Positions 32,393-64,000 of a DNA stretch of 64,000 nt are shown piece by piece. Positions within the stretch are counted from its first letter, which is position 1. Each line of letters begins with the position of its first letter. The stretch comes from Basidiobolus meristosporus CBS 931.73 (taxonomy: Eukaryota > Fungi > Basidiobolomycota): positions 3,700 through 67,699 of the forward strand of contig MCFE01000486.1 of the NCBI GenBank assembly GCA_002104905.1. The letters are read 5' to 3'. A model generated the notes under the pieces. It saw only the letters and a program-made list of their open reading frames with translations. It searched no databases and was not told where the DNA came from. The position numbers and the translations under genes are program-made.

Positions 32393-33326
32393 TGCGACAG
32401 ATACAACTTGAGATGGTCTACCTCACTCTATATATATTGTCAAGAAACTATCTAACAGAGTTGGAGCTTATTTAATCATCTTCCAACTACTCAATTCGTG
32501 AATATCATGTGCGTTGAGCTGGTCCGCTTTATTAGACTCCATTTGACGAGACGCGTTGCAGTATGTTGTTGAATGTGAATTGATTCTGAAAGCTGTGGAA
32601 GTAAACTCAGCGTTATCAAGTGCTACTAATAATATAATATTGGGCTGAGTTAAGTGCAACGAACAAGAAACACCCGAAACTGAGCCCTCGCAGGGCAATA
32701 AAAATACATGGAAAAGGGCTCTCATTGGATGCAACATTCATGTTTCAGGACTCAGTTACTGATCATATCAGTTAGCATTCTTACTGTTTCAATTATGATA
32801 TTCAACGGTGGTAATATATATAGAACATAAAAGTACTATAAAAAAAGGGTTGAAACAACTAACAACCAGCATTCGTTCCCAACAAGGTGGAGGGTTTGAT
32901 TTACCGTAATTTCGTCCATTTGATTTATGTTAATAAAAGTAATGTATGAACTCCCGACCCTCACAACATCGTAGGAACAGGATGTCATGAAAGGGTGCTA
33001 AGATGCTCTTTTCGTCTACGCTTATGTTGACGCTCTTCAACTACAAGTAGTAACAAGCCTATGGTGCTAAGAGGCTTATGAGCAACACGGATTATAAGCG
33101 GTGCCGCACGATAGGGTTTCACTATTCGCAGGCTACAAGTTTTATTTTGTTGATCAAGATATGGGAATTCCTCGAATTTATGATCCCATTTCTATTTTTA
33201 TCGGAAATTGCCCGAGCACTTGCTTTGTTATTTTGCCAGTCTATGGTATAGAATCTATCCATTTTTCATCCTCATTACTATGTTTTGTCTTCATTGAATC
33301 ACCCGCCTCATCTTTTGGCAAGTATC

Positions 33327-38672: not shown

Positions 38673-39022
38673 TGTTGTAAGAGTCTTGGAGATATTGGAA
38701 GTGATTTGGAGAACAAGTAGATTATGTGGTTTTCACTTAATGATTTATTGAATGTGAAAGTAGTATTTATACTTTTACATGGTCTTGGCATTACAAACAC
38801 GTAGAATAGGTTAAGGAAGGTCCCAAGAACATGTGTGCAAGGTTTGGGGCTGTTTGGACAACTTTGAGAATTTTCATGTTCTGGGTACCTGGTATTTTGG
38901 TGAAAATATTCTAAGTAAATCCCGACAAGGAATTTGGTCAGTATTCTCTAGGATTTGAAGGTGATGATCTAAGTGACTAAGTTAGGTGAATATTTAGGTG
39001 GAAAATACGAATTTTTACAACA
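38673..39022 (-). repeat. 3' LTR of copy C
   Basis: TG…CA ends with 8-bp terminal inverted repeat TGTTGTAA/TTACAACA. Contains TATAAATA and AATAAA on the element strand. Confidence 0.97.
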
Positions 39023-39031
39023 CTCCCACTC
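39023..39031 (-). other. Polypurine tract GAGTGGGAG of copy C
   Basis: Abuts the 3' LTR. The same sequence precedes the 3' LTRs of copies A and B and the 2007 relic. Confidence 0.85.
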
Positions 39032-39033
39032 AG

Positions 39034-42978: not shown

Positions 42979-42997
42979 TGCAGAGAGTGACAGCTTG

Positions 42998-43009
42998 GGG
43001 CTCATAACC
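42998..43009 (-). other. Primer-binding site GGTTATGAGCCC (internal tRNA-iMet, half-tRNA type)
   Basis: Directly abuts the 5' LTR (…CAACA|GGTTATGAGCCC), the pattern established for Drosophila copia and yeast Ty5. Confidence 0.85.
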
Positions 43010-43359
43010 TGTTGTAAGAGTCTTGGAGATATTGGAAGTGATTTGGAGAACAAGTAGATTATGTGGTTTTCACTTAATGATTTATTGAATGTAAAAGTAG
43101 TATTTATACTTTTACATGGTCTTGGCATTACAAACACGTAGAATAGGTTAAGGAAGGTCCCAAGAACATGTGTGCAAAGTTTGGGGCTGTTTGGACAACT
43201 TTGAGAATTTTCATGTTCTGGGTACCTGGTATTTTGGTGAAAATATTCTAAGTAAATCCCGACAAGGAATTTGGTCAGTATTCTCTAGGATTTGAAGGTG
43301 ATGATCTAAGTGACTAAGTTAGGTGAATATTTAGGTGGAAAATACGAATTTTTACAACA
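43010..43359 (-). repeat. 5' LTR of copy C
   Basis: 350 bp; differs from the 3' LTR at 2 positions, both G/A transitions. Confidence 0.97.
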
Positions 43360-43770: not shown

Positions 43771-46700
43771 AATATAAGCCTACTCTTCATCAATACACTC
43801 AACAGCTTCATAGATCTTCAATGTATTTTGACTTTAAGGCTTGGGTATAAACACAACAGTCTATCCCTCCCATGCTATGTTAGATTTTTCTGCAGGCTTT
43901 ATTGTTGGGCACTGTTGTTGTGCTTCAAAGGCCATACCATGTTCCCCTATTGTCACATTGAGAAATGGCTCAACTCGTAACTGTGATATTGAGCTACTTG
44001 AGCTCCTTCTTTGCAGTAAAGATACTGCAGTCTCTGCTTGGGGTACTGATTGCTCTACATGTATTATCCTCTTATCCTGTCACTGGACTATTCCCTGATT
44101 TCTCTGGGCTTTTGCATCTGTCCATCAGTCACTGCAACTAATTGCCTCATTGATGATTTGGCATGAGCTAACAACATAGTTGCCAATACTGGCAGTGGTG
44201 ATGTTACAATGGCTACTGTACCGCTTCTTGCTTGGGCAGACTGCTTTCATTGACCTATCCATTGTCCTCTACCATAATCACTGCCAGATGTGTTACTGCT
44301 ACTTTGCCTGTATGCTGCTTGCAATGTGCTAGGAGTTTCATAGGTAAGTACAGCACTGCTGCATCTGTTTCTGCCTGCTTGTCCTTTAATAGCACTCTTC
44401 TAGCTATCAGACATCTTTCTGCCACTTGATCTCAGCTTTGACAGGGATTGTGACTGATTCATGAGGCAGCTGCTGGCTTTTAGCTATGACAGCCTTGTAC
44501 TTCTGCTTTGAAAGTTTCTGCTGTTCTTGCAATATTTGGTTAGCATATCATTGCTGGCCCAAAATGAGCCCCCTACTGTGAAGAGGTCACATAAGTCCAT
44601 TAGAGCTTACTTATCTAACTAGATGAAAAAAGTATGAATAAAGCTTGCTGAACCTTGTGATTTAGTGTGTGTCTCAACAAAATTAAGATTGTGTCTCAGC
44701 AAAATTAAGATTCAACAATTCTGTTCTAGTTTCCATTCAAGCTTAGCATATCTAGCACTCCCAGGAACACCAAGCCTAAATTGCATAGCAATCCAACTCT
44801 GTTGCCATTATAGCCAAACCATGCCCTATGCGAGACTAACATCCAATCAGAATCTCTCTGCTAATATTTCAGCCACTCTCTGACAATTCTAGGACTCTGC
44901 ACTTAAGGTTTGCACTTCTGGTTAAAATAACAGAGCTGGTGCTCCAATGTCACCCAATGAAGTATATGGATTGTCTTTTTTAGGTCTTTTTTGAAATATG
45001 TCATAGGTTTTACTGCAGTGCCCAGTGCCTAGCTCATGTAAGCACCAGCAATACTAGTGAGTACATCCAGGCAGTAGGTGGGTAGTCTTCAACCTAGATT
45101 CTAATAAGTAGTGACTCTTCTACACATGGCTTTCCCTACTGATTCTAGACGTACCTGGCAATCTTTTCAACTTTGAAAATCCATTATTACCCAGTGATGC
45201 CTTTATATGGGCACTAGACTGTTGTGCTTGCCAAGCATATAGATCCTGCTCTTTGACCATATGTGCTGCTCTTTACCTATATACAGCACTTAATATTGGG
45301 GACTCTGGGCAGTGCAGGCTTGCATATATATCTCACTATGGCCAAAGGTTGCTTTCAGCTAGCAATCAAGAAAGCTTGAGACACAAACTGTGTGGGTTAT
45401 TACTGACTGTACTTGGTGAGTGGGAGAGCTTGTAGGTCAAGTCAGTACCACTTGGTTCAGAATAGCTTCCAATAGGAGGTAGTAAGGTAATAAAGACTTG
45501 TGTTTATTTTGTCCCAAATCTCCTTGTTCTCTTGCTTGGTTCAATTGGGTAGATATATATCACTTGGGGGCTTAGATAATAGACAATGTGTTATAAAATA
45601 GGGGTGTGAACACCTTCCTATTATGGTAAGTGTTCTAACTAGATAAGGGCAGGGATAGGAGGGAGGGCACGTGGGGGAATCATAGGGAGGATACTGGGGG
45701 ACTTTGGGTAGGACTCTGGGGAGAACTCTTGGGTGAAGAGTGGGTACTGCATTTAGTACTCACAAACTGCAGTCATTTATAAATATAACTCATTCATATC
45801 TTTCTTCCTTTGAAAGTATCAGCAAGAGCTGAGGTGAAAAGGGGTTAGTAAAGCAGCTAGTTAGTCAAGTGAAGCTCTGTAAGAAGATAAGATCAGAAAA
45901 GATCAGCACAATACTGTAATACTGTTAGCCAATTGCTAAGTTTTGCAACCCTTAATATATGAGATACTAAGTATTTGACAAATAGGTATTTCTGTCTTCC
46001 AACAGATGAGTGAGCCTGCCAGCATTCATACCAAATATGTTAAACAACTACTCACTACTCCCACCAAAAGTTGCACCTCCAAGTTTAGAGAAAAAACACT
46101 GGGTGAATGCCAGCAAAAACCTGAGAGAATACCATCAAAATACTGGCAAACTATCAGATGGACTTCCTGTTAGAGGTTTTTGATAGGGACTATGTCTATA
46201 ATGCTCAATAATAGAGGTCAAGTGAGCAAAGACTTGAAAACATCTGAAACTGGCAAGTGTGCATGGATGCTCATTAGTAGCTGTCAGGACAAAGCTAGCC
46301 TACCACTAAATTTTTTGTTTTCATATTACACAATGTGGACTCATAACTTTTGTAGCCAGCATACACCATAGAGGCAGTGTCCTGGGGTAAATATTAGTTT
46401 TGGCTAGTTGCAACTATTAGATGTAATTTGCTGTAGCATGATTATCACTGGGCATTTGCATTGATCCTAATCTAGTAATCTGCTTAGCCTATGCACACTA
46501 TATTATGGCTGCTAGCTAGTAAAGTTATTTACAAGTTCTGGAAATAGCATCCTAGCCACCCTTGACATATGTATTGCTGAATATACTTCTATGTCATCAT
46601 GCCACTGCTCTCACTTAAGATTGTATTACTCACCTCCTTACTTTGTTAGCTAGAACTTGCTGCTACTAGAATATTTAATATTAAGGCATGTATACAAGCT

Positions 46701-47130
46701 GCCAGCTGAGGGATGATGATTTGGGGCTGTTGCTGTTTAGGTAGATAAAGGGTCTGCTAATGGCCTGTACTTGAGCAAGCTGATAAAATTTTGATAGTGC
46801 ATTGGCCTTACCAAACAAATGGCCATTGATGATGAGCTTCAAAAATAGGACCATTACAACCGTGATTACTCACTTGTTAGAATTCACTCACACATATCTG
46901 AGAAACCTTACTTCTCAATCAATGGCAGGTCTTCTTTGCTGAAAGCTAACGTCTCCTGATAACAGGCTCCCAACCACTGAGCACATAGCTTGTTGGTATA
47001 AAATATCTGAGATTAAAAATATGGGATTGGTGCAACAAGCAAGAGGAAGGAAAGCTGGGTGACCACGTGGCAACTTCCCTCATGAAATTGACAACCTTCT
47101 GCCACTTTCTCTATGCCACTCAAGCTACTA
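43771..47130. repeat. CpG-depleted decayed DNA of unidentified origin (its last 1.3 kb lie in the palindrome arm)
   Basis: Near absence of CG, no intact ORF, no recognisable motif. Confidence 0.45.
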
Positions 47131-47812
47131 ATTAATTATTAATAATGGAAACAGTACTAGCGCGTATGACACCAACAGCGGTAGCAGCGGTAATAGCAGT
47201 GCTGGGAACGGAGGGACTAGCAATGGTGGTAATGACGGGAATGCAGGAAACAGGGCTGGAGGCTGTGATTCTGAAGGTGGTGGTGCCGGGGATAGAGGTG
47301 CTGGCATGGAAATGATAAATAAGTAATGGCAATAACGATGTCAACAAAAGCGGAGGCCAGTGTAACTAAAATGTAACATAGAATTGTTTGTAACTCAGTA
47401 AAGTATCTACCATTTCAATGGCCCCAGGATTCAGGCCAACATGCACTGGTGTACTCAGTATATACTGCTTTTCATGATTCTATTTGGCTCTCCCAGATTA
47501 TCCAAAATAACAGCATAGATAAACTGCTGCTTACGACACTCTGTAACAGGCTGCACTTGAAACAACAGCATATGTAGCCTCGGAAATGCTTGGCATTCCT
47601 GGTATCGGGTTTTGCAGTCAGAAATACATATAACAATAACCATGCAACTTTTGTTCGTTTATTAGTCAAAACAAGTAAAGCCATATTTCTTTGGGTTATC
47701 CTTGCATAAGTTACTAAAATGTACTTAGGCACTGTGCGTAGTGGTCTTCGTTTCATACAATCAATCTGGACAGAAGCCAGGCACCAGAAATCCATTGGCA
47801 GTGTTTACATGA

Positions 47813-48481
47813 CTAATAGTCATAATTCTCGAAAGGATTCATGGTAAACGGAGCTTTGTAGCCATTTTTTGGCATCATGGGTAACACCACACTACTGCGA
47901 AGTCCATTCTTGATCATATTTTCGGTGGCAGGGATGATTGTGTTATACTGAGATCCAGGACCATGTGGGATCATACAAACACGTTCTCCGACACAGTTGG
48001 GTTCGCTATAAAAGCAATAGATGGCTTCGGTAGGCCAGTAAAGGACAAAGCCTCCGTTATTCTCAACGGGGTCAATGTTTGCGCACTGCCTAAACTCAGG
48101 ATACGTGATGGGGAAGCCATCCACGCCGCTGGCATCACTGGCTAAAGAAATTGTCGCAGTTGCGGCAACAGTTTCGTTGACATCGTTGTCCTCAATGGCT
48201 GCTTGGTTGGCCGGGCTACTCCAGATCAAAAACCTTGCATCCAGCTCTGATGCCACCACCCCGGAGAACCATGCAGGGTTGCAAACAGGAAAGCCTCCAT
48301 ATAGATTCTGCGCCTCTTCGGAGTTGTTACAAGGAGCATCAACAGGGTACTCTTGCTCAATCGGTGTGGAAGTAAGCGCAGGAATCTTCCCCGTGAGGTC
48401 AAGAGTGATCCCGGTAGGCTTAGCTAAGGCAGAAGCAGCAAGCACGGTCCAAACAGCTAGGGCGGTCAAGCGAAGTTGCAT
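47813..48481 (-). CDS. Secreted 6-Cys protein, 222 aa, intronless (left-arm copy)
   Basis: Signal peptide MQLRLTALAVWTVLAASALA, CFYSEPNCVG motif, TATATAA about 50 nt upstream. Protein identical to the right-arm copy. Confidence 0.85.
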   Translation of the reverse strand: MQLRLTALAVWTVLAASALAKPTGITLDLTGKIPALTSTPIEQEYPVDAPCNNSEEAQNLYGGFPVCNPAWFSGVVASELDARFLIWSSPANQAAIEDNDVNETVAATATISLASDASGVDGFPITYPEFRQCANIDPVENNGGFVLYWPTEAIYCFYSEPNCVGERVCMIPHGPGSQYNTIIPATENMIKNGLRSSVVLPMMPKNGYKAPFTMNPFENYDY

Positions 48482-51400
48482 ATTAATCTTTGGGGTTGGG
48501 ATGCTCCACAAATACACGCATAGCATCTATTATATACCGATGATGCCCCTGCTTCCCTCCGTTGTCTGACTGATGCCTTATCGCAGTGGAAAATTCCATC
48601 CGTCTGATTTTTGCTTGCTATCATTTTTCCACCTCATCCTACCAGACACTAGGTGGCAACAGCATCTTGACCACGCCAAGCAGCCGCAGAGGTATTCATG
48701 AAAGTGGAATATTCTATTACGCTACTCAATATAGTAATGCAAGTGGTTGTTTGTCAGTACAACATTCTAGCTGCTTCCTACCGACCAACTTGGTGGAGTG
48801 GTGGTCAACACTGCAACACATGTGAAAAAAGATAGATTTACCAAAAGGGGCTAGTCAAAGAAGTAGATATCAAATGAGAGCACGAGTGAGGTATATCCTT
48901 GTATATATGTCATGTATCTACTTGCTCCTACAAAACTGACCCGATGTGTAAGATGCAAATTTATTGGTCTTACCAGGTCTGTTGTTATTGACCCAAGGAT
49001 GAGGGATAATACAGCCAGTGTGAAATTATTTGGTGTGTCACAAGATCGCACAATATGAATATTGATGCACCATCTGAGTTGTACATTAGCCTTGAACGCT
49101 GCCTTCTAAGCTTCATGTTATGGATAGCCTCAGTGAGGAGAATTGATGGTCTTTTTTTATTCATAGAATCATCATATTCTGCGCCTAGCCAATGGTCTAT
49201 TGTAATTTGGCTTCTATTTTCATTGCTCGTAATACTTGTATGTACTTCCATTTTTGGCGAAATTCGCCGATAAGGAATAAATATGGTTTGAGAATGTAGT
49301 TATCACGAACAATCTTTATTACTAATCCCAAGTAGCTCGATCAATCTGTATGAACTTGTATGGGCAAATGGGGTTCAAGAAATTGGCATTTACATCATCA
49401 TTGCGGTGCTGAGCTCTTCAAACAATGCATAAAGGAATGAGTCAATTTCAGATGGCAATTAGAAGTAAATAAGCTCGATTGTAGCTAATACCGAGCTCAG
49501 AGATGTCAGTGACTTTTGATAAAACAACAGTAGCTCAACATGAATGGATGGGAGCGGTAGCATTTCAACCAGAATTTGATGATCATACTGCCATTGCAGT
49601 GAATCATAAAAAACGCTTTGCCCCAAGTCGAAGTATTTTGCTACAATATGTGAGAAAACTAAACACACCAAGTGCTGCTGATAAGTGTGGTTTCTCAGGG
49701 AGATATGGGATATTGCAATATAATCAGCAAAACCGCTTTTTTATTATCTCTCATTGTTAGTTGGACTGGGGGAAGACACAGCTCAAATGCTGCATAGACA
49801 AGTTGTTTAAGAGGAAACTCTATTCTAGACGGTTATTTAGATACAGTAATCACTCCCACAAGCATGTGAAGTGCTCAGATGACAAGTACTATGCTGCTCC
49901 GTAAATGCATCATTGTGATGAAGTCTTTAGTGAGGGTAGGAGGGTGACAGTCACCATAAAGTGAAATCTTTATTTCAATAACTCATAATAACGAAGCAAA
50001 GTGCGATATGTGTAGCTTTTTAACAAGTGAACAAAGAGAGGTATCTTTTTGCGACAGCTTATATAAATGACTACTAAGCTGAAAAGGAGTCAAGACAGGG
50101 TTAAGTGGCTGTGGGGGTATAACTGAAGGAGGTAATGGGTTATTGAGAGGAGCTAATGATATTTCATATAACAAAGTCATTTTTGGCTACATCGGCGGTG
50201 ACCTACCAAGGTGGATCGCCGCGTGATAAACAGAATCTGTTGATCAACATTTAGATGAATAGCCTCTCATTTGCAGTTGTAAATACCGATACTTTCATCT
50301 TCCAAATCGTTTTCTGGATTGAATTTTATGAAGGATTTACTGTTTTGTCGACTACATTGCCGGATTTTGAGTCATGCCTCAAACGGTACTGAATTTATTT
50401 CTACCACATTAATTCAGTTTTTTATTGAGCAGTTAGTAACAGGAAGCTGTCGTACGCACACGGCAAAGTACTGACGCTGCTAAGTGTATGTTTCATTTGA
50501 TAGCGATGGTGTGCTTACTAACTTGGACCTGGCTTAGTGCTCCATTTCTTTCGATTCCTTTTGACGCGACTCGGTCAGGCGCTATTAATAAGTATATATT
50601 AAAAGAAATAAGTACCTGAACCAGTACCTATTTGAGCTATATATGTACAAATCAACATTCAGTAATGCACTCGAAAGGGCTCGAGAAGTGGCGTTAAATA
50701 AAATCTCTTCCCAATTTTCTTACTGTATATTCGTCCATGGATTAACAAATCGATCACATATACTTGTCATCCGCAAGCAGAAGTAGCCGTAGCAAGAAAC
50801 GAAACCTCCAGGATTTGATTGGATGGCTTGTAAAGCATCATCATTAGCGGCAATTCTATACAGCCATTCACCCACACTGACTTTCGTTTAGAAGACGAAA
50901 TGGACCTTAGACTCAGCTCAGAGGTATATGAAGCCTATATTAGCTCTCATGAAGTCCAAGAATCTATTGTCTGCCACAGTTACCTAGAATATACATTTTC
51001 TTCAATAGATTCACGATTGAACCACTGTACCATGAACGTTTTGATTACGGGAAAGGCTTACAATTGGCCTATAACAACCTTTTGAGCACCAATAAAGATC
51101 CCTGTTGGATGATTTAGTAGAAGCCAAATTTCGTGGTGGCTCTGTTACTTATTTCGGACAGTAATCATGATGAAATATGGGTGATAATCCATCTCAAGCA
51201 ACGAACGGATATCCTGTAAGCTGCCATGACAATTGTTTTACTGACGTAAAGACTGTCCAAATCAATTTTCAAGTGCGATTCTGGAAGCCCAGACCAAAAT
51301 GCATGCTCAAGGTGGGTAAAGATATTGTCTACACTACCTCAATTGTCAAGGAGAGGCATAGTGCCGAGTCTGAGTTAGCGGGCATCAAAGCCACCGCCTA

Positions 51401-52030
51401 TCATTTCCATCAATCGGTAATCGAGATATCCGACGCGCAACATATGGTAACCAGTTACCGAATTGAGTGGTGATACATGGAAACTTGTGATAATATTCAA
51501 GTCAAACTACAAATAGAAGCGTTTCAATGGATACGTTTTATCATCCGAAGGATATACTAACCACATGTGCATGCCATATTTTTCATAAAATTGCCTGCAA
51601 TGCACCCTGAGACCAATCTACTGAAATCCAGCTAGTCGGGAGTGATACACGATATAATCTCAAATACCATCTTAGAGCTAAGTAGTTGATCAAAAACCCG
51701 ATCCGGAAATCGTACACAGATCTACACAGATATTCGGTGGTCATTGGCTGGCTCCAAATTTATTTGGCACACTGCGGAACCCAGAAAGTCAACTGAAATA
51801 ACCATATATGGCAATGATGGAAATAACGACCAGGCCTTCAATTGCCAATATCAGACAGAAAATGTGATCTAACCAGCACAGGCTAAAACGCCGCTCATAA
51901 AAAGTTTGATCGTAATTGTCGGTGCAACACGTGATACCTGAATTTATTGATGGTAGTTCGCAAAAACGGTGTAAACGCATTACACTTGGTGACGAGCAAC
52001 ACGAGAGTGCTGAACATGTAAAGGGCACAA

Positions 52031-53023
52031 TTACTGTGCCTTTGCGGTCTTCTTGACTTCGAACCGGCGGTTGGTCGCAGGGGCATCATATTCCAGTTTA
52101 GTGGAGCCTTTACAGTAAGCATCAGTGGTGCCACAGTAGCCATAGCTGGAGCAGCAGTAGCCAGGTTGGCACTGACGCATCACATCTCCAAACCAGCCAC
52201 AACGTCTATCAGTTTGATTTGCAACAACAATGTCTATTCCCAAATTATTGGGATCGTATGGATACCACTGCCATTGTATGGGTTTGTTGTTATATCCATC
52301 GTAGCCAGCCGGGCCGTTGATAGACATCCAGATAGCCGTTTTATTATCTGCGAAGCCTGCACCCCATGTGCCGTCGGGACCAGGATATGTATAAGATATT
52401 GAGCCACCGAGCGAGGGGTACCAATACTTGGCGCCATTATGTTTGTAGGCTTGTTTACTCCAAACGCCCACGCGCATTCCATTGTCGAGTCCCTGGGGAT
52501 TTTCGAGAAATTGGTCGAAGCGGCCAAGACCATTGCTTAGGTTGTCGTTGATAACCCGCAGTTTACCAAATAGCATCCATTCGTCATCAATACGTAGTTG
52601 GGCTGTGTAGATCAAATAATCACCATCCTCCTCGTAATCAATCTGGAAGCCGTAATCCACTCCATCAAGCCATGGATAAAAGTACTGCATGTGGGACCCA
52701 GTGCCCTCGTGGCCAAAGCGACTAGTCACACACTCCTTGCATGTCTCCACTACGGTTGCTCGTCCTTTGGAGTTGTCCCAGAGAGAGAAGAGGAATACAC
52801 GTTTTTCGGCCCATGTCTGCATTCCCATATATCCGTTGTTCCAGCCGATGGCCTCCCAGTAAGTTTGGTTGGGACTAAATTCAGGAACAGACCTAACGTC
52901 AGTCTGAAAGGAGATAAACTTCTTCCCATCATCGGGGAGACTGGCATGGTTGTGCATTGCCTGCGAGAGCACCTTTGCTGCGAACAGCGAGGTAAGCGAG
53001 AGGAAAAGAGTTGGAAGCTGCAT
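52031..53023 (-). CDS. Secreted DUF3472-like + hevein/CBM18 chitin-binding protein, 330 aa, intronless (left-arm copy)
   Basis: Signal peptide; GYMGMQ…RVFLFSLWD…FGHEGTG…YPW…FLEN pattern recalled for DUF3472; C-terminal CGxxxxxxxxCxxGxCCSSYGYCGxxxxYC hevein motif. Confidence 0.82.
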   Translation of the reverse strand: MQLPTLFLSLTSLFAAKVLSQAMHNHASLPDDGKKFISFQTDVRSVPEFSPNQTYWEAIGWNNGYMGMQTWAEKRVFLFSLWDNSKGRATVVETCKECVTSRFGHEGTGSHMQYFYPWLDGVDYGFQIDYEEDGDYLIYTAQLRIDDEWMLFGKLRVINDNLSNGLGRFDQFLENPQGLDNGMRVGVWSKQAYKHNGAKYWYPSLGGSISYTYPGPDGTWGAGFADNKTAIWMSINGPAGYDGYNNKPIQWQWYPYDPNNLGIDIVVANQTDRRCGWFGDVMRQCQPGYCCSSYGYCGTTDAYCKGSTKLEYDAPATNRRFEVKKTAKAQ

Positions 53024-54640
53024 GATATTCTACCGAAACATGGAACTCGACCATGCTTATAAAGCAGTTCCATTTTGCCAACACAACGATCACGTTTCGT
53101 TACAAATTATGAGAACAAGCAGAGATTTCACCCTGATTTAGTAGTGGATGATTGTGCTCTACTATTGTGGCAACTCGGGTAGTTGAGTACCACTTAGTAT
53201 GAAATGAATGGATCCTCAATGGTGATCCACGGATAAATAACATCGTTGATGATGGTTTCATGCGGCTTATAGAAGATTCCAAAACTAAAGGTATCTTACA
53301 TACTGGTCTTGATAAATGACGGTCCAAGGAAGGATTATCTGAATTCGGATGTAGCTGCTCCTACAGTGCACACATGACGCATTAGTATACAGTCAGTGAA
53401 CCTAGAGTGTTCTATCATAGCGCGAGGAATTCGGAACTACAATAATGGCATAGGCTATAAGCAGTAACTTGTGCACAACCCTCTTTCTTCTCAGCAATTG
53501 TGAAGCTCGGAAGAGGCTATACCAACACCACAGCCATCGAGGGTCAAATCCAACGCTTCAGTTAGGAAATATAGACATTCTTCACCATGCGCCAAGGAGC
53601 ACGAGCATGGCGGATGCAATATCCTGGTGAGACAGTTTGCCAAAGATGAGTTGTAATGTGCACACTACTCCAGAACGTCAACACATTCTAGCATATCTAC
53701 TAATAATGATCAGTGTCTAAAATGCGGTGGCGATAGCCTGTCCACTGCTCATTTCACAAATTACTCACACATTTGGAATATAGTTTAGCCATACCGCACG
53801 TGATATTTCAGCGTTCCTCGCGTATCATACCTTCATAGACACTCTCATAGAACTTCATAGTATCCGGGTGTATAAGGTTAAGGTTCCGATTGCTTGACTT
53901 AATAAATGTTCCGATTAAGGTTAGTTCAATGTGGCCAATAGATTACCTAAAATAATCTTTGTCGAGATTCCGATTTAGAGTTAGCATTATGTTTCAGTAA
54001 GGAGCTGAGCATCATGGAAAATCACACTAAACTCCATTTTTGACCAAGCCGATAAACACATAGATTTCCCTTTTCTGAAAGTATCATTTGATTTGGTTGA
54101 TGCAACCAGGGTCCGATTGGTGGTCGACAAATGTGGGATGGAGGATTGATAGGTGATGCGAGATAGAGGTATCTGCGGGCTGGCCAAGCCTTTTGATCTT
54201 GCCAAAGATTTGCTTATATGGAAAACCCCACTTAAAAATATGGCTTAGGGGCTCGTCGGAACACTTTGAAAGATAAACATTTGCGCAGACCCGACATACT
54301 CCCCATTTCCAGGGCTTCGTGACAGATCTTGCATCAGCTTCCTGTTCCGTCAGAAGTAAATCTGGAAAATACCAAAATTTCCCGGATTGATTGAACTGGA
54401 ACAACATGACTTATGACCAACATTCAGCAAACTCATTGGGCAATTGGGATACTGAAGCCACTGTTTAGTGCTTCGGGGCGTAAGTATGTGGCCAATCATT
54501 ATCAATATTAATAAAGAGAAAAGTTAGGATGCGGGCATTGTGGTAATGGCCAGGTGAGGGAAAGCCACCAGTATAGTGAGATCTTTATCTCACTCAGTAT
54601 GTACAAAACTACTAAAGCTAAGGTAAGGAAGCCAGGAAAG

Positions 54641-55200
54641 TGTTACTCACCATCCCAAGTAAGCAATCTAGAACTTTGTTTCTTGGTTACGTTGCCCTGA
54701 ATTGAATGAAGCCACTTACTCAAATGGCTTGCAGCTATTATTCTTACTTGCTCCAGCTGTGTTACAACCAGTATCTATTTCTAGAGCTTCTGTGTTAAAC
54801 TATGTACTGTTGTCATCCTGTAAAAGCACTAAAATTCTCACCATAAGATGTACATCCCTACCGGCTTAAATTTTTGCCATATTTTTGACTGCAAATATAG
54901 ATCTCACCAACTCTTATTGACTTTTCCTCCTTCCTAGCGCTAAGTAGCGCTCCCACAAGATTTCATGCTGGCATATCTTTGCCGACTTTGTGCCAGTTAC
55001 TGTTCTAGCTGTAAAGTTACTGAGAGCAGAAAAGCCCAAACTGTATTATTTATTCTATAGAAAAATGCCATTTATAATATGTAATTTCCCAACGCACTTT
55101 GATTTTCTCTTCTCCTGAGAGTAACCTCATATAATTCAGTGCAATATCACCCAAGAAACAAAGCTCAAGTTAGACTATTTACTAATGATATTCAATTAAT
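54641..55200. other. Unique 560-bp spacer between the inverted arms
   Basis: Arm homology ends at GGAAAG (54640) and CTTTGC (55201). The spacer has no self-similarity beyond a 6-bp hairpin. Confidence 0.8.
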
Positions 55201-56805
55201 CTTTGCGGCCTTCTTTACTTTAGCCTTGGTAACTTTGTACCTACTTAGTAAGATAAGGATCTCACCATACTGGTGGCTTTCCCTCCCCTGACTGTTACCA
55301 GAATGCCTGCATCTTAACTTTCCCCTCTATTGATGCTAATAATGATTGGCCGCGTACGTGCACCTGAAGCACGGAACAATGACCTCGGTATTCCAGTTGC
55401 CCAATGAGTGATTGTGTGTCGATTGTTGATAATAAGTCATGTCGTTCCAGTTCAATCAATCCGGTAAATTTTGGTATTTTCCAGACTTACTTCGGACGGG
55501 ATAAGAAGCTGATACAAGGTCTGACACAAAGCCCTGGAAATGGGGAGTATGTTGGGCCTGCGCAAATGTTTATCTTTCTAAGTATTCCGACTAGCCCCTA
55601 AGCCATATTTTTAAGTGGGGTTTTCCATATAAGTAAAATTTTGGCACAACCAATAGGCTTGGCCAGCCCGCTGATACCACCATCTTGCATGACCCATTGA
55701 TCCCCCATCACATATTTGTTGTCCATCAATCAGACCCTGGTTGCATCAACCAAATCGAATGATACTTTCAGAAAAGGGAAATCTATGTGTTTATCGGCTT
55801 GGTCAAAAATGGAGTTTAGTGTGATTTTCCATGATGCTCAGCTCCTTACTGAAACATAATGCTAACTCTAAATCGGAATCTCGACAAAGATTATTTTAGG
55901 TAATCTATTGGCCACATTGAACTAACCTTAATCGGAACATTTATTAAGTCAAGCAATCGGAACCTTAACCTTATACACCCGGATACTATGAAGTTCTATG
56001 AGAGTGTCTATGAAGGTATGATACACGAGGAACGCTGAAATATCACCTGAGGTATGGTTAAGCTATATTCCAAATGTGTGAGTAATTTGTGAAATGAGCA
56101 GTGGACAAGCTATCGCCACTGCATTTTAGACACTGATCATTATTAGTGGGTATGCTAGATTGCGTTGACGTTCTGGAGCAGCGCGTACATTGCAACTTAT
56201 TTTTGGCAAACTGTCTCGCCATGCTCGTGCTCCTTGGCGCATGGTGAAGAATGTCTATATTTCCTAACTGAAGCGTTGGATTTGACCCTCGATGGCTGTG
56301 GTGTTGGCATAGCCTCTTCCGAGCTTCACAATTGCTGAGAAGAAAGAGGGTTGTGCACAAGTTACTGCTTATAGCCTATGCCATTATTGTAGTTCCGAAT
56401 TCCTCGCGCTATGATAGAACACTCTAGGTTCACTGACTGTATACTAATGCGTCATGTGTGCACTGTAGGAGCCGCTACATCCGTATTCAGATAATCCTTC
56501 CTTGGACCGCCATTTATCAAGACCAGTATGTAAGATATCCTTAGTTTTGGAATCTTCTATAAGCCGCATGAAACCATCATCAACGATGTTATTTATCCGT
56601 GGATCACCATTGAGGATCCGTTCATTTCATACTAAGTGGTACTCAACTACCCGAGTTGCCACAATAGTAGAGCACAATCATCCACTACTAAATCAGGGTG
56701 AAATCTCTGCTTGTTTTCATAATTTGTAATGAAAAGTGATCTTTGTGTTGGCAAAATGGAACTGCTTTATAAGCATGGTCGAGTTCCATGTTTCGGTGGA
56801 ATATC

Positions 56806-57798
56806 ATGCAGCTTCCAACCCTTTTCCTCTCGCTTACCTGGCTGTTCGCAGCAAAGGTGCTCTCGCAGGCAATGCACAACCATGCCAGTCTCCCCGATGA
56901 TGGGAAGAAGTTTATCTCCTTTCAGACTGACGTTAGGTCTGTTCCTGAATTTAGTCCCAACCAAACTTACTGGGAGGCCATCGGCTGGAACAACGGATAT
57001 ATGGGAATGCAGACATGGGCCGAAAAACGTGTATTCCTCTTCTCTCTCTGGGACAACTCCAAAGGACGAGCAACCGTAGTGGAGACATGCAAGGAGTGTG
57101 TGACTAGTCGCTTTGGTCACGAGGGCACTGGGTCCCACATGCAGTACTTCTATCCATGGCTTGATGGAGTGGATTACGGCTTCCAGATTGATTACGAGGA
57201 GGATGGTGATTATTTGATCTACACAGCCCAACTACGTATTGATGACGAATGGATGCTATTTGGTAAACTGCGGGTTATCAACGACAACCTAAGCAATGGT
57301 CTTGGCCGCTTCGACCAATTTCTCGAAAATCCCCAGGGACTCGACAATGGAATGCGCGTGGGCGTTTGGAGTAAACAAGCCTACAAACATAATGGCAGCA
57401 AGTATTGGTACCCCTCGCTCGGTGGCTCAATATCTTATACATATCCTGGTCCCGACGGCACATGGGGTGCAGGCTTCGCAGATAATAAAACGGCTATCTG
57501 GATGTCTATCAACGGCCCGGCTGGCTACGATGGATATAACAACAAACCCATACAATGGCAGTGGTATCCATACGATCCCAATAATTTGGGAATAGACATT
57601 GTTGTTGCAAATCAAACTGATAGACGTTGTGGCTGGTTTGGAGATGTGATGCGTCAGTGCCAACCTGGCTACTGCTGCTCCAGCTATGGCTACTGTGGCA
57701 CCACTGATGCTTACTGTAAAGGCTCCACTAAACTGGAATATGATGCCCCTGCGACCAACCGCCGGTTCGAAGTCAAGAAGACCGCAAAGGCACAGTAA
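56806..57798 (+). CDS. Secreted DUF3472-like + hevein/CBM18 chitin-binding protein, 330 aa (right-arm copy)
   Basis: As the left copy. About 6 nucleotide and 2 amino-acid differences (S12W in the signal peptide; HNGAK vs HNGSK). Hevein domain at about 57625-57717. Confidence 0.82.
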   Translation: MQLPTLFLSLTWLFAAKVLSQAMHNHASLPDDGKKFISFQTDVRSVPEFSPNQTYWEAIGWNNGYMGMQTWAEKRVFLFSLWDNSKGRATVVETCKECVTSRFGHEGTGSHMQYFYPWLDGVDYGFQIDYEEDGDYLIYTAQLRIDDEWMLFGKLRVINDNLSNGLGRFDQFLENPQGLDNGMRVGVWSKQAYKHNGSKYWYPSLGGSISYTYPGPDGTWGAGFADNKTAIWMSINGPAGYDGYNNKPIQWQWYPYDPNNLGIDIVVANQTDRRCGWFGDVMRQCQPGYCCSSYGYCGTTDAYCKGSTKLEYDAPATNRRFEVKKTAKAQ

Positions 57799-60700
57799 TT
57801 GTGCCCTTTACATGTTCAGCACTCTCGTGTTGCTCGTCACCAAGTGTAATGCGTTTACACCGTTTTTGCGAACTACCATCAATAAATTCAGGTATCACGT
57901 GTTGCACCGACAATTACGATCAAACTTTTTATGAGCGGCGTTTTAGCCTGTGCTGGTTAGATCACATTTTCTGTCTGATATTGGCAATTGAAGGCCTGGT
58001 CGTTATTTCCATCATTGCCATATATGGTTATTTCAGTTGACTTTCTGGGTTCCGCAGTGTGCCAAATAAATTTGGAGCCAGCCAATGACCACCGAATATC
58101 TGTGTAGATCTGTGTACGATTTCCGGATCGGGTTTTTGATCAACTACTTAGCTCTAAGATGGTATTTGAGATTATATCGTGTATCACTCCCGACTAGCTG
58201 GATTTCAGTAGATTGGTCTCAGGGTGCATTGCAGGCAATTTTATGAAAAATATGGCATGCACATGTGGTTAGTATATCCTTCGGATGATAAAACGTATCC
58301 ATTGAAACGCTTCTATTTGTAGTTTGACTTGAATATTATCACAAGTTTCCATGTATCACCACTCAATTCGGTAACTGGTTACCATATGTTGCGCGTCGGA
58401 TATCTCGATTACCGATTGATGGAAATGATAGGCGGTGGCTTTGATGCCCGCTAACTCAGACTCGGCACTATGCCTCTCCTTGACAATTGAGGTAGTGTAG
58501 ACAATATCTTTACCCACCTTGAGCATGCATTTTGGTCTGGGCTTCCAGAATCGCACTTGAAAATTGATTTGGACAGTCTTTACGTCAGTAAAACAATTGT
58601 CATGGCAGCTTACAGGATATCCGTTCGTTGCTTGAGATGGATTATCACCCATATTTCATCATGATTACTGTCCGAAATAAGTAACAGAGCCACCACGAAA
58701 TTTGGCTTCTACTAAATCATCCAACAGGGATCTTTATTGGTGCTCAAAAGGTTGTTATAGGCCAATTGTAAGCCTTTCCCGTAATCAAAACGTTCATGGT
58801 ACAGTGGTTCAATCGTGAATCTATTGAAGAAAATGTATATTCTAGGTAACTGTGGCAGACAATAGATTCTTGGACTTCATGAGAGCTAATATAGGCTTCA
58901 TATACCTCTGAGCTGAGTCTAAGGTCCATTTCGTCTTCTAAACGAAAGTCAGTGTGGGTGAATGGCTGTATAGAATTGCCGCTAATGATGATGCTTTACA
59001 AGCCATCCAATCAAATCCTGGAGGTTTCGTTTCTTGCTACGGCTACTTCTGCTTGCGGATGACAAGTATATGTGATCGATTTGTTAATCCATGGACGAAT
59101 ATACAGTAAGAAAATTGGGAAGAGATTTTATTTAACGCCACTTCTCAGAGCCCTTTCGAGTGCATTACTGAATGTTGATTTGTACATATATAGCTCAAAT
59201 AGGTACTGGTTCAGGTACTTATTTCTTTTAATATATACTTATTAATAGCGCCTGACCGAGTCGCGTCAAAAGGAATCGAAAGAAATGGAGCACTAAGCCA
59301 GGTCCAAGTTAGTAAGCACACCATCGCTATCAAATGAAACATACACTTAGCAGCGTCAGTACTTTGCCGTGTGCGTACGACAGCTTCCTGTTACTAACTG
59401 CTCAATAAAAAACTGAATTAATGTGGTAGAAATAAATTCAGTACCGTTTGAGGCATGACTCAAAATCCGGCAATGTAGTCGACAAAACAGTAAATCCTTC
59501 ATAAAATTCAATCCAGAAAACGATTTGGAAGATGAAAGTATCGGTATTTACAACTGCAAATGAGAGGCTATTCATCTAAATGTTGATCAACAGATTCTGT
59601 TTATCACGCGGCGATCCACCTTGGTAGGTCACCGCCGATGTAGCCAAAAATGACTTTGTTATATGAAATATCATTAGCTCCTCTCAATAACCCATTACCT
59701 CCTTCAGTTATACCCCCACAGCCACTTAACCCTGTCTTGACTCCTTTTCAGCTTAGTAGTCATTTATATAAGCTGTCGCAAAAAGATACCTCTCTTTGTT
59801 CACTTGTTAAAAAGCTACACATATCGCACTTTGCTTCGTTATTATGAGTTATTGAAATAAAGATTTCACTTTATGGTGACTGTCACCCTCCTACCCTCAC
59901 TAAAGACTTCATCACAATGATGCATTTACGGAGCAGCATAGTACTTGTCATCTGAGCACTTCACATGCTTGTGGGAGTGATTACTGTATCTAAATAACCG
60001 TCTAGAATAGAGTTTCCTCTTAAACAACTTGTCTATGCAGCATTTGAGCTGTGTCTTCCCCCAGTCCAACTAACAATGAGAGATAATAAAAAAGCGGTTT
60101 TGCTGATTATATTGCAATATCCCATATCTCCCTGAGAAACCACACTTATCAGCAGCACTTGGTGTGTTTAGTTTTCTCACATATTGTAGCAAAATACTTC
60201 GACTTGGGGCAAAGCGTTTTTTATGATTCACTGCAATGGCAGTATGATCATCAAATTCTGGTTGAAATGCTACCGCTCCCATCCATTCATGTTGAGCTAC
60301 TGTTGTTTTATCAAAAGTCACTGACATCTCTGAGCTCGGTATTAGCTACAATCGAGCTGATTTACTTCTAAATGCCATCTGAAATTGACTCATTCCTTTA
60401 TGCATTGTTTGAAGAGCTCAGCACCGCAATGATGATGTAAATGCCAATTTCTTGAACCCCATTTGCCCATACAAGTTCATACAGATTGATCGAGCTACTT
60501 GGGATTAGTAATAAAGATTGTTCGTGATAACTACATTCTCAAACCATATTTATTCCTTATCGGCGAATTTCGCCAAAAATGGAAGTACATACAAGTATTA
60601 CGAGCAATGAAAATAGAAGCCAAATTACAATAGACCATTGGCTAGGCGCAGAATATGATGATTCTATGAATAAAAAAAGACCATCAATTCTCCTCACTGA

Positions 60701-61293
60701 GGCTATCCATAACATGAAGCTTAGAAGGCAGCGTTCAAGGCTAATGTACAACTCAGATGGTGCATCAATATTCATATTGTGCGATCTTGTGACACACCAA
60801 ATAATTTCACACTGGCTGTATTATCCCTCATCCTTGGGTCAATAACAACAGACCTGGTAAGACCAATAAATTTGCATCTTACACATCGGGTCAGTTTTGT
60901 AGGAGCAAGTAGATACATGACATATATACAAGGATATACCTCACTCGTGCTCTCATTTGATATCTACTTCTTTGACTAGCCCCTTTTGGTAAATCTATCT
61001 TTTTTCACATGTGTTGCAGTGTTGACCACCACTCCACCAAGTTGGTCGGTAGGAAGCAGCTAGAATGTTGTACTGACAAACAACCACTTGCATTACTATA
61101 TTGAGTAGCGTAATAGAATATTCCACTTTCATGAATACCTCTGCGGCTGCTTGGCGTGGTCAAGATGCTGTTGCCACCTAGTGTCTGGTAGGATGAGGTG
61201 GAAAAATGATAGCAAGCAAAAATCAGACGGATGGAATTTTCCACTGCGATAAGGCATCAGTCAGACAACGGAGGGAAGCAGGGGCATCATCGG

Positions 61294-61300
61294 TATATAA
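61294..61300 (+). promoter_or_regulatory. Putative TATA box (TATATAA) of the secreted 6-Cys gene (mirrored at about 48530-48536)
   Basis: Lies 49 nt upstream of the signal-peptide ATG at 61349. Confidence 0.5.
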
Positions 61301-61348
61301 TAGATGCTATGCGTGTATTTGTGGAGCATCCCAACCCCAAAGATTAAT

Positions 61349-62017
61349 ATGCAACTTCGCTTGACCGCCCTAGCTGTTTGGACCGTGCTTGCTGCTTCTG
61401 CCTTAGCTAAGCCTACCGGGATCACTCTTGACCTCACGGGGAAGATTCCTGCGCTTACTTCCACACCGATTGAGCAAGAGTACCCTGTTGATGCTCCTTG
61501 TAACAACTCCGAAGAGGCGCAGAATCTATATGGAGGCTTTCCTGTTTGCAACCCTGCATGGTTCTCCGGGGTGGTGGCATCAGAGCTGGATGCAAGGTTT
61601 TTGATCTGGAGTAGCCCGGCCAACCAAGCAGCCATTGAGGACAACGATGTCAACGAAACTGTTGCCGCAACTGCGACAATTTCTTTAGCCAGTGATGCCA
61701 GCGGCGTGGATGGCTTCCCCATCACGTATCCTGAGTTTAGGCAGTGCGCAAACATTGACCCCGTTGAGAATAACGGAGGCTTTGTCCTTTACTGGCCTAC
61801 CGAAGCCATCTATTGCTTTTATAGCGAACCCAACTGTGTCGGAGAACGTGTTTGTATGATCCCACATGGTCCTGGATCTCAGTATAACACAATCATCCCT
61901 GCCACCGAAAATATGATCAAGAATGGACTTCGCAGTAGTGTGGTGTTACCCATGATGCCAAAAAATGGCTACAAAGCTCCGTTTACCATGAATCCTTTCG
62001 AGAATTATGACTATTAG
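61349..62017 (+). CDS. Secreted 6-Cys protein, 222 aa, intronless (right-arm copy)
   Basis: Identical protein to 47813-48481. Confidence 0.85.
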   Translation: MQLRLTALAVWTVLAASALAKPTGITLDLTGKIPALTSTPIEQEYPVDAPCNNSEEAQNLYGGFPVCNPAWFSGVVASELDARFLIWSSPANQAAIEDNDVNETVAATATISLASDASGVDGFPITYPEFRQCANIDPVENNGGFVLYWPTEAIYCFYSEPNCVGERVCMIPHGPGSQYNTIIPATENMIKNGLRSSVVLPMMPKNGYKAPFTMNPFENYDY

Positions 62018-64000
62018 TCATGTAAACACTGCCAATGGATTTCTGGTGCCTGGCTTCTGTCCAGATTGATTGTATGAAACGAAGACCACTACGCACAGTG
62101 CCTAAGTACATTTTAGTAACTTATGCAAGGATAACCCAAAGAAATATGGCTTTACTTGTTTTGACTAATAAACGAACAAAAGTTGCATGGTTATTGTTAT
62201 ATGTATTTCTGACTGCAAAACCCGATACCAGGAATGCCAAGCATTTCCGAGGCTACATATGCTGTTGTTTCAAGTGCAGCCTGTTACAGAGTGTCATTTT
62301 GGATAATCTGGGAGAGCCAAATAGAATCATGAAAAGCAGTATATACTGAGTACACCAGTGCATGTTGGCCTGAATCCTGGGGCCATTGAAATGGTAGATA
62401 CTTTACTGAGTTACAAACAATTCTATGTTACATTTTAGTTACACTGGCCTCCGCTTTTGTTGACATCGTTATTGCCATTACTTATTTATCATTTCCATGC
62501 CAGCACCTCTATCCCCGGCACCACCACCTTCAGAATCACAGCCTCCAGCCCTGTTTCCTGCATTCCCGTCATTACCACCATTGCTAGTCCCTCCGTTCCC
62601 AGCACTGCTATTACCGCTGCTACCGCTGTTGGTGTCATACGCGCTAGTACTGTTTCCATTATTAATAATTAATTAGTAGCTTGAGTGGCATAGAGAAAGT
62701 GGCAGAAGGTTGTCAATTTCATGAGGGAAGTTGCCACGTGGTCACCCAGCTTTCCTTCCTCTTGCTTGTTGCACCAATCCCATATTTTTAATCTCAGATA
62801 TTTTATACCAACAAGCTATGTGCTCAGTGGTTGGGAGCCTGTTATCAGGAGACGTTAGCTTTCAGCAAAGAAGACCTGCCATTGATTGAGAAGTAAGGTG
62901 TCTCAGATATGTGTGAGTGAATTCTAACAAGTGAGTAATCACGGTTGTAATGGTCCTATTTTTGAAGCTCATCATCAATGGCCATTTGTTTGGTAAGGCC
63001 AATGCACTATTAAAATTTTATCAGCTTGCTCAAGTACAGGCCATTAGCAGACCCTTTATCTACCTAAACAGCAACAGCCCCAAATCATCATCCCTCAGCT
63101 GGCAGCTTGTATACATGCCTTAATATTAAATATTCTAGTAGCAGCAAGTTTTAGCTAACAAAGTAAGGAGGTGAGTAAGACAATCTTAAGTGAGAGCAGT
63201 GGCATGATGACATAGAAGTATATTCAGCAATACATATGTCAAGGGTGGCTAGGATGCTATTTCCAGAACTTGTAAATAACTTTACTAGCTAGCAGCCATA
63301 ATATAGTGTGCATAGGTTAAGCAGATTACTAGATTAGGATCAATGCAAATGCCCAGTGATAATCATGCTACAGCAAATTACATCTAATAGTTGCAACTAG
63401 CCAAAACTAATATTTACCCCAGGACACTGCCTCTATGGTGTATACTGGCTACAAAAGTTATGAGTCCACATTGTGTAATATGAAAACAAAAAATTTAGTG
63501 GTAGGCTAGCTTTGTCCTGACAGCTACTCATGAGCATCCATGCACACTTGCCAGTTTCAGATGTTTCCAAGTCTTTGCTCACTTGACCTCTGTTATTGAG
63601 CATTATAGACATAGTCCCTATCAAAAACCTCTAACAGGAAGTCCATCTGATAGTTTGCCATTATTTTGATGGTATTCTCTCAGGTTTTTGCTGGCATTCA
63701 CCCAGTGTTTTTTCTCTAAACTTGGAGGTGCAACTTTTGGTGGGAGTAGTGAGTAGTTGTTTAACATATTTGGTATGAATGCTGGCAGGCTCACTCATCT
63801 GTTGGAGGACAGAAATACCTATTTGTCAAATACTTAGTATCTCATATATTAAGGGTTGCAAACTTAGCAATTGGCTAACAGTATTACAGTATTGTGCTGA
63901 TCTTTTCTGATCTTATCTTCTTACAGAGCTTCACTTGACTAACTAGCTGCTTTACTAACCCCTTTTCACCTCAGCTCTTGCTGATACTTTCAAAGGAAGA

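Follow-up and report, generated by a model that had tools for sequence, protein, structure and literature searches.

Palindromes that carry genes are maintained by conversion on the primate X and Y chromosomes, where the arms are typically uniform at more than 99.9% identity over tens to hundreds of kilobases and lie in non-recombining regions. Sex-chromosome palindromes of this kind are documented (PMC11168930). The subtelomeres of yeast contain duplication blocks and gene families, and such features are also documented for the chromosome ends of Magnaporthe (PMC1635262). Other inverted structures are products of terminal rearrangement: fold-back inverted duplications with a spacer are known from human inv-dup-del rearrangements (PMC3907307), telomere loss triggers palindromes in yeast (PMC4981268), in which foldback inversions are also known (PMC7467729), and fusion of sister chromatids has been described for the accessory chromosomes of Zymoseptoria (PMC3681731).

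In the present study, we analyzed a stretch of 64,000 nucleotides (the window) of the Basidiobolus meristosporus assembly, which contains a mirror-image repeat spanning about 18 kb. This locus resembles terminal inverted duplications in that two inverted arms flank a short spacer present in single copy and the distal arm has the inverse polarity, and its setting is apparently a chromosome end; furthermore, the distal arm of a sister locus is truncated and joined to telomere repeats. However, the known cases are recent events in patients, mutants and crosses, whereas the Basidiobolus palindrome is old, with arm divergence of up to 15-30%. It is a fixed part of a wild-type genome, occurs at two contig ends and was later partly homogenised, and short inverted seeds are no longer visible in it. 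With the primate palindromes it shares kilobase-scale arms, a unique spacer, intact paired genes and an arm identity far above that expected from the age of the duplication, but its homogenisation is patchy and differs between the two sister loci, and its arms are about 9-10 kb long and apparently subtelomeric. With fungal subtelomeres it shares gene families of secreted or surface type, transposons, interstitial telomere repeats and near-identical blocks across ends, although descriptions of such regions do not usually include a shared block with a palindromic layout. No paper on Basidiobolus palindromes or subtelomeres was among the top results of the literature search. According to an earlier note on this DNA, no such structure is known to have been reported from an early-diverging fungus; as a structure it is modestly new, since chromosome-end palindromes and conversion-maintained palindromes are both well known.

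The window comprises positions 3700-67699, that is, the final 64 kb, of contig MCFE01000486.1 (67,699 bp; contig 486), and its position 64000 coincides with the contig end. In a single BLAST alignment, positions 45803-54631 are the reverse complement of 64000-55210 with 97.9% identity over 8,837 nt (129 mismatches and 10 gaps), and a repeat search of the window resolved the inverted repeat into six collinear blocks. Thus, the giant palindrome claimed in the earlier note was recovered, with its spacer refined from 560 to 578 bp. The arm length of at least 8.8 kb claimed there is determined by the assembly, in which the contig ends at 64000, short of the outer end of the palindrome. The parts of the palindrome, none of which has a strand, are as follows.

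45803 to 54631: left arm, in native polarity with the chromosome interior to the left, as judged from a telomere-element relic and the gene-rich flank on its left; the outer limit given here is set by its partner leaving the contig
46905 to 52430: left-arm share of the near-identical tract, a proposed conversion tract
53024 to 56805: diverged centre between the two B genes, with arm identity falling from 97% through 84% to 67% toward the spacer
54632 to 55209: spacer of 578 bp with weak leftover complementarity at its edges; the sister spacer is 99-100% identical and in the same orientation
55210 to 64000: right arm, an inverted copy truncated at 64000, where the contig stops

The arms are not clonal, as had been claimed: substitutions, 1-bp indels, a 17-bp indel, a 26-bp indel and a diverged centre are all present. 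Eleven substitutions separate the arms over 45997-46904, and just two substitutions and one 1-bp indel do so over the 5.5 kb of 46905-52430. Beyond 52430 the divergence rises, with 84% identity at 54119-54512 and about 67% further in. At the 26-bp indel (47509-47534) and the 17-bp indel (53612-53628), the copy with the bases present is in both cases that of the left arm. No RIP-like mutation bias was found in the diverged centre, in which transitions occur in all four directions and the transition/transversion ratio is about 2.7. A discrete short inverted seed is not recognisable at the spacer boundary, where the identity decays gradually from 84% to 67% to none; the outer edges of the spacer show weak complementarity (z of 3.4-5.3 against shuffles), and its innermost 320 bp or so show none (z of 1.5 against shuffles). 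A fold-back chimera of long reads would leave perfect arms without a spacer or arm-specific variants. This signature was not found, because the locus has a 578-bp spacer and a centre of 67-84% identity that recurs on a second contig, and short-read contigs contain letters specific to one arm. The arm-spacer-arm layout was assembled independently on two contigs.

Each arm contains two intact intronless genes with signal peptides, designated here as A and B.

47813 to 48481, minus strand: gene A, left copy, encoding 222 aa with a signal peptide and six cysteines in the mature part
61349 to 62017, plus strand: gene A, right copy, the same as the left copy (669 of 669 nt)
52031 to 53023, minus strand: gene B, left copy, encoding 330 aa with a signal peptide, DUF3472 (PF11958) and a hevein-type chitin-binding module (PF00187)
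56806 to 57798, plus strand: gene B, right copy, sharing 99.4% identity with its left counterpart

All four copies begin with MQL, after which comes a hydrophobic stretch resembling a signal sequence, are directed outward from the palindrome centre and agree with single-exon models in the deposited annotation; on these genes, which are predicted to be secreted, the open reading frames and the deposited models both bear out the earlier description. The two B genes differ by synonymous changes in three codons and non-synonymous changes in two.

A sister palindrome was found at the end of contig MCFE01000226.1 (contig 226). In the centre, the left arm of the window matches the sister left arm at 99-100% and the right arm matches the sister right arm at 100%, whereas left and right are only 67-97% identical to each other. 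Each side of the centre thus agrees at 99-100% with its counterpart in the sister locus, so that the arms are old. Near the centre, the arms are 67-85% alike, and the outer arms of the sister locus are 76-93% identical to each other. From 55210 to about 57700, the right arm of the window is 100% identical to the sister right arm; outward from about 57700, it instead copies the left arm of the window at 99-100%, and the left and right outer arms of the window are 99-100% identical (99.9-100% in the four-arm comparison). The sister stretches matching 46905-52430 are 76-97% identical between arms, mostly 80-93%, and the sister A-B intergenic region is 88.8% identical. Gene B is 99.4% identical between left and right in both loci, within an island of at least 99% identity, and the arms are 97.5-100% alike across 2 kb around it. 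Upstream of B, the sister arms are also 97% identical to each other over 1.1 kb of non-coding sequence. Judged against the sister copy, the arm identity exceeds what the duplication age allows. Arm-to-arm gene conversion, already suggested in the earlier note, fits this four-arm pattern and appears to be the best reading of it; conversion is favoured over selection because the high identity reaches into non-coding DNA.

Two other relations between contigs 486 and 226 were considered and rejected. Overlapping ends or inversion isomers of one locus do not agree with the identical orientation of the spacers, nor with a sister right outer arm that is only 76-93% like the left arm of the window. 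Simple duplicate haplotigs do not agree with an F-box gene that lies 25 kb from the palindrome on contig 486 only, without a second copy. The near flanks of the two loci share just shuffled copia fragments and one stretch of 75-80% identity.

Within the gene B stretch, the right arm changes from a 100% match to the sister right arm to a 100% match to the left arm, which raises the question of whether the outer 5-6 kb of this arm (from about 57.7 or 59.3 kb to 64.0 kb) is a mis-join on an otherwise real core palindrome. Reads in reverse complement, derived from the left arm or from a second haplotype or another chromosome end with the left-arm sequence, would then have been attached through the near-identical gene B region, and the true right arm would resemble the diverged, telomere-capped arm of the sister. 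The suspect part sits at a contig end, the similarity across the 2 kb around gene B is sufficient for false overlaps of raw PacBio reads, and two 1-bp indels of the right arm have no short-read support and resemble consensus errors. In short-read contigs from the same sample, window-type letters are absent at many sites in 58150-58620, and the window-type depth is only about 1 to 1.5 times that of one sister-arm copy against the twofold expected at equal dosage, a ratio that lacks a unique-flank baseline and is soft, since each depth adds up contig means and is raised by further partial copies (loose ends). At 58232, for example, the word depth is 155-179 for the window type and 316-330 for the sister arm; the window-type word depth is 225-240 over 62.3-64.0 kb and 407-450 where the sister left arm is shared. 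However, at three outer sites the same deep short-read contigs include the left-type as well as the right-type letter, and at eight further sites they include the right-arm letter alone; therefore, the right outer arm is a real, distinct sequence. Moreover, the assembly has no other home for a second copy, the window-type gene A protein being encoded on contig 486 only, in two places. A fold-back mis-join would have no reason to end at 64000; a contig of reads anchored in the unique centre would end about one read length out, as observed. We consider a mis-join of the outer right arm to be rather improbable, although it is the main rival of the explanation preferred below, and the link from the spacer through the inner to the outer right arm is taken as provisional.

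The earlier note placed the palindrome at a heterochromatin border. The flank is indeed rich in repeats and low in GC, but the locus is better described as lying in a chromosome-end (subtelomeric) zone, because the sister right arm joins telomere repeats and elements and paralogues of A and B lie near telomere repeats. The sister right arm stops at the equivalent of window position 62939 and is followed by (TTAGGG)2, a 723-bp element, (TTAGGG)3 and the beginning of another, similar element. The 723-bp element also adjoins the terminal (TTAGGG)33 on contig 116 (97.8% identity), 8 kb from a gene A paralogue. For a paralogue of gene B, the distance is 7.5 kb to (CCCTAA)3 and 12 kb to the end of its contig. 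No telomere repeat was found in the window itself, whose right arm runs off the contig; its own position at a chromosome end is deduced from the sister locus and from the fact that the contig ends at this point. Two further features belong to this setting.

49925 to 50002, plus strand: telomere-element junction relic, a decayed G-rich telomere-like repeat joined to the start of the 723-bp element
38673 to 43359, minus strand: intact LTR retrotransposon of the copia type, a short way outside the left arm, with LTRs 99.4% alike

The junction relic is a weak BLAST match (E of 3e-6 over 58-62 nt) with a mirror copy at about 59828-59905; it is also found in both sister arms, and in the left arms it has right-end polarity. 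The copia element is part of a repeat-rich zone beginning near 33.3 kb.

These observations bear on a reading close to that of the earlier note, namely an internal ampliconic palindrome that would lie where euchromatin meets heterochromatin, have nothing to do with chromosome ends and be maintained by selection, in which conversion would protect a dosage-sensitive pair of secreted-protein genes. This reading is favoured by the gene pair being intact in each arm, by the conversion signature that both loci show around gene B and by the composition of the flank. However, telomere repeats and telomere-associated elements directly cap the sister arm, the gene families recur near telomere repeats, and both loci end their contigs. 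In addition, the sister locus is homogenised only in the gene B region; its gene A is 93% identical between arms with non-synonymous differences in 18 codons, and is annotated within a merged gene model of 391 aa. Such a palindrome is thus unlikely, and the proposal of a stable amplicon that doubles and homogenises an effector-like gene pair goes beyond the evidence.

The presence of two genomic copies with long inverted arms, with retrotransposons nearby, could also suggest a giant foldback-type transposon or a cargo element with long terminal inverted repeats. In agreement with the earlier note, no transposase was found by Pfam in arm open reading frames of at least 80 aa, nor was an integrase or tyrosine-recombinase domain; the only transposase- or recombinase-type domains found are in the copia element outside the arm. 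The termini of the two copies differ, one being cut by telomere repeats and the other running at least 1 kb further, homology between the loci persists at 75-80% outside the well-conserved block, and the divergence of the arms is mosaic rather than uniform. A mobile element is therefore highly improbable.

Our best explanation, held with moderate confidence, is that the palindrome is an old subtelomeric terminal inverted duplication of the fold-back or breakage-fusion-bridge type, which has since been homogenised in patches; the fold-back seeding suggested in the earlier note fits this explanation. A chromosome end bearing genes A and B would have lost its tip, and the exposed strand would have folded back on a short inverted sequence, with the loop becoming the present spacer. 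Copying would then have made the mirror arm, and the resulting chromosome would have broken and been re-capped with telomere repeats. The sequences show that the arms subsequently diverged by about 15-30% and that patches were later made alike, namely an island of about 2-3 kb around gene B in both known loci and, in the window locus, the entire arm from about 52.4 kb outward. The occurrence of the cassette at two contig ends with an almost identical centre is as expected of subtelomeric blocks that exchange sequence. Under this explanation of a terminal inverted duplication, the two secreted-protein genes are passengers held in two copies.

More speculatively, and with rather low probability in our view, Basidiobolus chromosome ends may repeatedly pass through a cycle of tip loss, fold-back palindrome and renewed capping, in which telomerase and retroelements that target telomeres would take part. 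Conversion, both inside one end and from end to end, would keep the palindromes partly identical. They would then be a regular engine that duplicates and diversifies families of secreted proteins specific to the lineage, represented here by gene A and by gene B with its DUF3472 and hevein parts.

The palindrome reveals no new mechanism. If its structure holds, however, it is a natural, long-lived chromosome-end palindrome, whereas such events are mostly known fresh from patients, tumours and yeast mutants; its two sister loci, at different stages of homogenisation, would allow conversion tracts to be read directly from the sequence, and a little-studied fungal lineage would be seen to duplicate its own secreted-protein genes. 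For annotation, it should be kept in mind that two contig ends of this assembly carry near-identical sequence.

As for the proteins, neither that of gene A nor that of gene B matched an NCBIfam entry. Among the sequencing runs listed for gene A there was none of RNA; one run (X3, of unrecorded type) covers the gene A open reading frame only, with paralogue-type letters. The gene A family was found only in Basidiobolus, and the AlphaFold2 model of its protein has a pLDDT of 27.7. A single motif of 23 columns gives a possible resemblance of gene A to beta/gamma-crystallin or I36 repeats, which we mention only as a lead.

The inverted repeat claimed in the earlier note is real in the sequence: a repeat search gave 6 collinear inverted blocks in the window, and BLAST joined 45803-54631 to 64000-55210 in a single alignment of 8,837 nt at 97.9% identity. 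Base-by-base comparison agrees that the arms are non-clonal, with indels of 17 bp and 26 bp and a more diverged centre, as the note had also said.

Features of the window (strand in brackets)
32940-33112 (-): H/ACA snoRNA (Rfam snR35, 53.7 bits, E 7e-9), where the window's gene-rich part ends
38673-43359: intact copia-type LTR retrotransposon (1,367-aa gag-pol ORF with all domains; LTRs 99.4% alike)
45803-54631: left arm of the palindrome
47813-48481 (-) and 61349-62017 (+): gene A, 222 aa
49925-50002 and 59828-59905: relic in which a G-rich, telomere-like repeat, now decayed, runs into the first ~60 nt of a 723-bp telomere-associated element (weak match, E 3e-6)
52031-53023 (-) and 56806-57798 (+): gene B, 330 aa
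54632-55209: spacer
55210-64000: right arm

The outermost arm (45997-46904) has 11 substitutions between the arms; inward of 46904 and up to 52430 there are merely two (49458 and 49471) and one 1-bp indel. Arm identity then drops steadily towards the centre, from ~97% at 52.9-54.1 kb to 84% at 54.1-54.5 kb and ~67% beyond. Weak complementarity is left at the edges of the spacer (z 3.4-5.3), and by the same test none is kept in its innermost ~320 bp. The source genome, GCA_002104905.1, is a PacBio assembly (PMC7466969). Position 64000 is the end of contig MCFE01000486.1 (67,699 bp; the window is 3700-67699), and thus the right arm is cut off by the assembly.

Each arm carries two single-exon genes directed outward from the centre. 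Both proteins begin with MQL and a hydrophobic stretch of the signal-peptide type, as read from the sequence, which matches the two intronless, outward-transcribed genes of the earlier description. Gene B contains DUF3472 (PF11958, E 8e-39) and a hevein-type chitin-binding module (PF00187, E 2e-8), and its closest solved structures are the uncharacterised protein 4qhw and pokeweed lectins. Gene A had no match in Pfam or NCBIfam, and in a search of 1.84 billion representatives its family was seen only in B. meristosporus and B. ranarum; its weak, single-motif resemblance to beta/gamma-crystallin / I36 repeats gives a lead at most. The absence of a transposase reported previously holds for the arms, where no transposase-like domain was found in ORFs of at least 80 aa; such domains are confined to the intact copia element left of the arm. 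That the palindrome is itself a mobile element fits less well and is hardly credible. The copia element was probably active recently; the stretch at 33.3-38.2 kb holds several more LTRs, solo or partial.

The cassette of genes A and B recurs at the start of contig MCFE01000226.1 (122,520 bp), the first 29,948 bp of which were rebuilt in window orientation for comparison. This sister locus consists of a copia-fragment flank, a left arm (A, A, B), a spacer, a right arm (B, A-like, A-like) and the contig end, with a tandem duplication of gene A in each arm. Window 47448-59285 aligns with it collinearly at 98.4%, including the spacer, which has the same orientation. No second copy of the F-box gene flanking the window's palindrome was found in the assembly, and the near flanks have nothing in common apart from copia pieces in shuffled order and a single 75-80% stretch; therefore, contigs 486 and 226 are separate loci. 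The possibility that they are haplotigs, or one locus seen twice, was ruled out on the same grounds.

At the centre (52.1-54.9 kb in window coordinates), the window left arm equals the sister left arm at 99-100% and the window right arm equals the sister right arm at 100%, whereas left and right are 67-97% identical. Since same-side centres match across the loci and opposite sides differ, the inverted duplication is older than the last exchange between the loci, and so is old. Between the sister arms, identity is 76-93% in the outer arm and 88.8% in the A-B intergenic region, versus 99.4% in gene B and 97% in the 1.1 kb of non-coding sequence upstream of it. That identity stays this high past the coding sequence, in a pair that is diverged elsewhere, is a sign of gene conversion between arms, rather than of purifying selection alone. 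The window arms are 99.9-100% identical from 52.4 kb outward and ~99% in the last kilobase. The window's outer right arm is 76-93% identical to the sister right arm versus 98-100% to both left arms; read most simply, left-arm sequence was recently copied over the right arm at the window locus. For gene A, the two sister arms show synonymous differences in 25 codons and non-synonymous ones in 18, so its homogenisation is not a constant of the cassette. The interpretation in the earlier note is supported in part: homogenisation between arms agrees with the four-arm comparison, but an amplicon that steadily homogenises both genes as a pair goes further than these data. An internal amplicon maintained by selection also fits less well, and we consider it improbable.

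The main rival, which we regard as rather unlikely, is an assembly mis-join: through the near-identical gene B region, the wrong sequence would have been attached as the outer 5-6 kb of the window's right arm. Two deep sequencing runs of one sample (X1 and X2), in the form of contigs, were compared with window 58001-64000. Every difference from the window is an other-arm or sister-locus letter, suggesting that the sample is the same strain. The sister locus has diverged too far to match in the outermost 1.7 kb. Here left-type and right-type letters both occur at 63567, 63592 and 63807, and the right-arm letter alone at 8 more sites; hence, the outer right arm truly exists as a sequence different from the left. 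Neither 1-bp indel of the right arm, one of them in a run of A, had support in these contigs. Word depth is 225-240 across 62.3-64.0 kb and 407-450 where words are common with the sister left arm. At 58232, window-type unitigs have depths of 155-179 versus 316-330 for the sister type. Sister-locus letters dominate 58150-58900, where these contigs often lack the window-type letter, as they do at many sites within 58150-58620. Window-type depth is ~1-1.5 times one sister-arm copy, not twice, on a scale set by the sister arm rather than unique flank and with partial copies elsewhere; measured in this way, depth speaks neither for nor against the outer right arm. Loose ends at 58354, 58840, 59565, 61232 and 62747 match neither contig, which shows that the genome holds additional partial arm copies. 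A third run from the same study under another organism label (X3) is confined to 61369-61992 in the ORF of gene A, and its letters are of paralogue type; X3 is either transcriptomic or from a relative that has retained just the coding part. The listing of runs for gene A contained no RNA run.

The sister right arm breaks off at the equivalent of window 62939 (left arm 46866). Beyond the break (L001 17820-18752) lie (TTAGGG)2, the 723-bp element, (TTAGGG)3, the start of a similar element and the contig end, which looks like a stack of telomere-associated elements. Homology goes on past this point in both window arms and the sister left arm, so the sister right arm was truncated and capped. The element (97.8%) also adjoins a terminal (TTAGGG)33 on contig MCFE01000116.1 (L010 1-1103), 8 kb from a gene A paralogue. 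The relic, a weak match (E 3e-6), is present in all four arms of the two loci, with right-end polarity in the left arms, and may mark where a chromosome once ended. No telomere repeat was seen near the palindrome within the window itself, whose subtelomeric position we infer.

We lean, with moderate confidence, towards an old, subtelomeric terminal inverted duplication of fold-back / breakage-fusion-bridge type, which two chromosome ends have in common and which conversion has homogenised in patches. A fold-back origin is suggested by the spacer, the arm polarity and the telomere-capped truncation of the sister locus. Such an origin agrees with mechanisms on record for humans and for yeast (PMC3907307, PMC7467729, PMC4981268), as well as with the fusion of sister chromatids described in a pathogenic fungus (PMC3681731), so no new mechanism is involved. 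With its two sister loci, this early-diverging fungus would offer a readable conversion record for a palindrome at a chromosome end.

Paralogues lie on other contigs. A gene B paralogue (278 aa, 68% identical) on MCFE01000064.1 (L011 10001-10837) lies 12 kb from a contig end and 7.5 kb from an interstitial (CCCTAA)3 (L011 2550-2567). Contig MCFE01000860.1 (L009 611-10669) has a tandem array of at least 4 gene A paralogues, of 222 aa each, with a ~3-kb period, 80-87% DNA identity to the window copy and adjacent copia fragments. In the window, arm divergence steps from 1.2% to 0% at 46904/46905, within ~40 bp of the sister capping point (46866-46905 / 62900-62939); the chance of such closeness was estimated at 1-3%.
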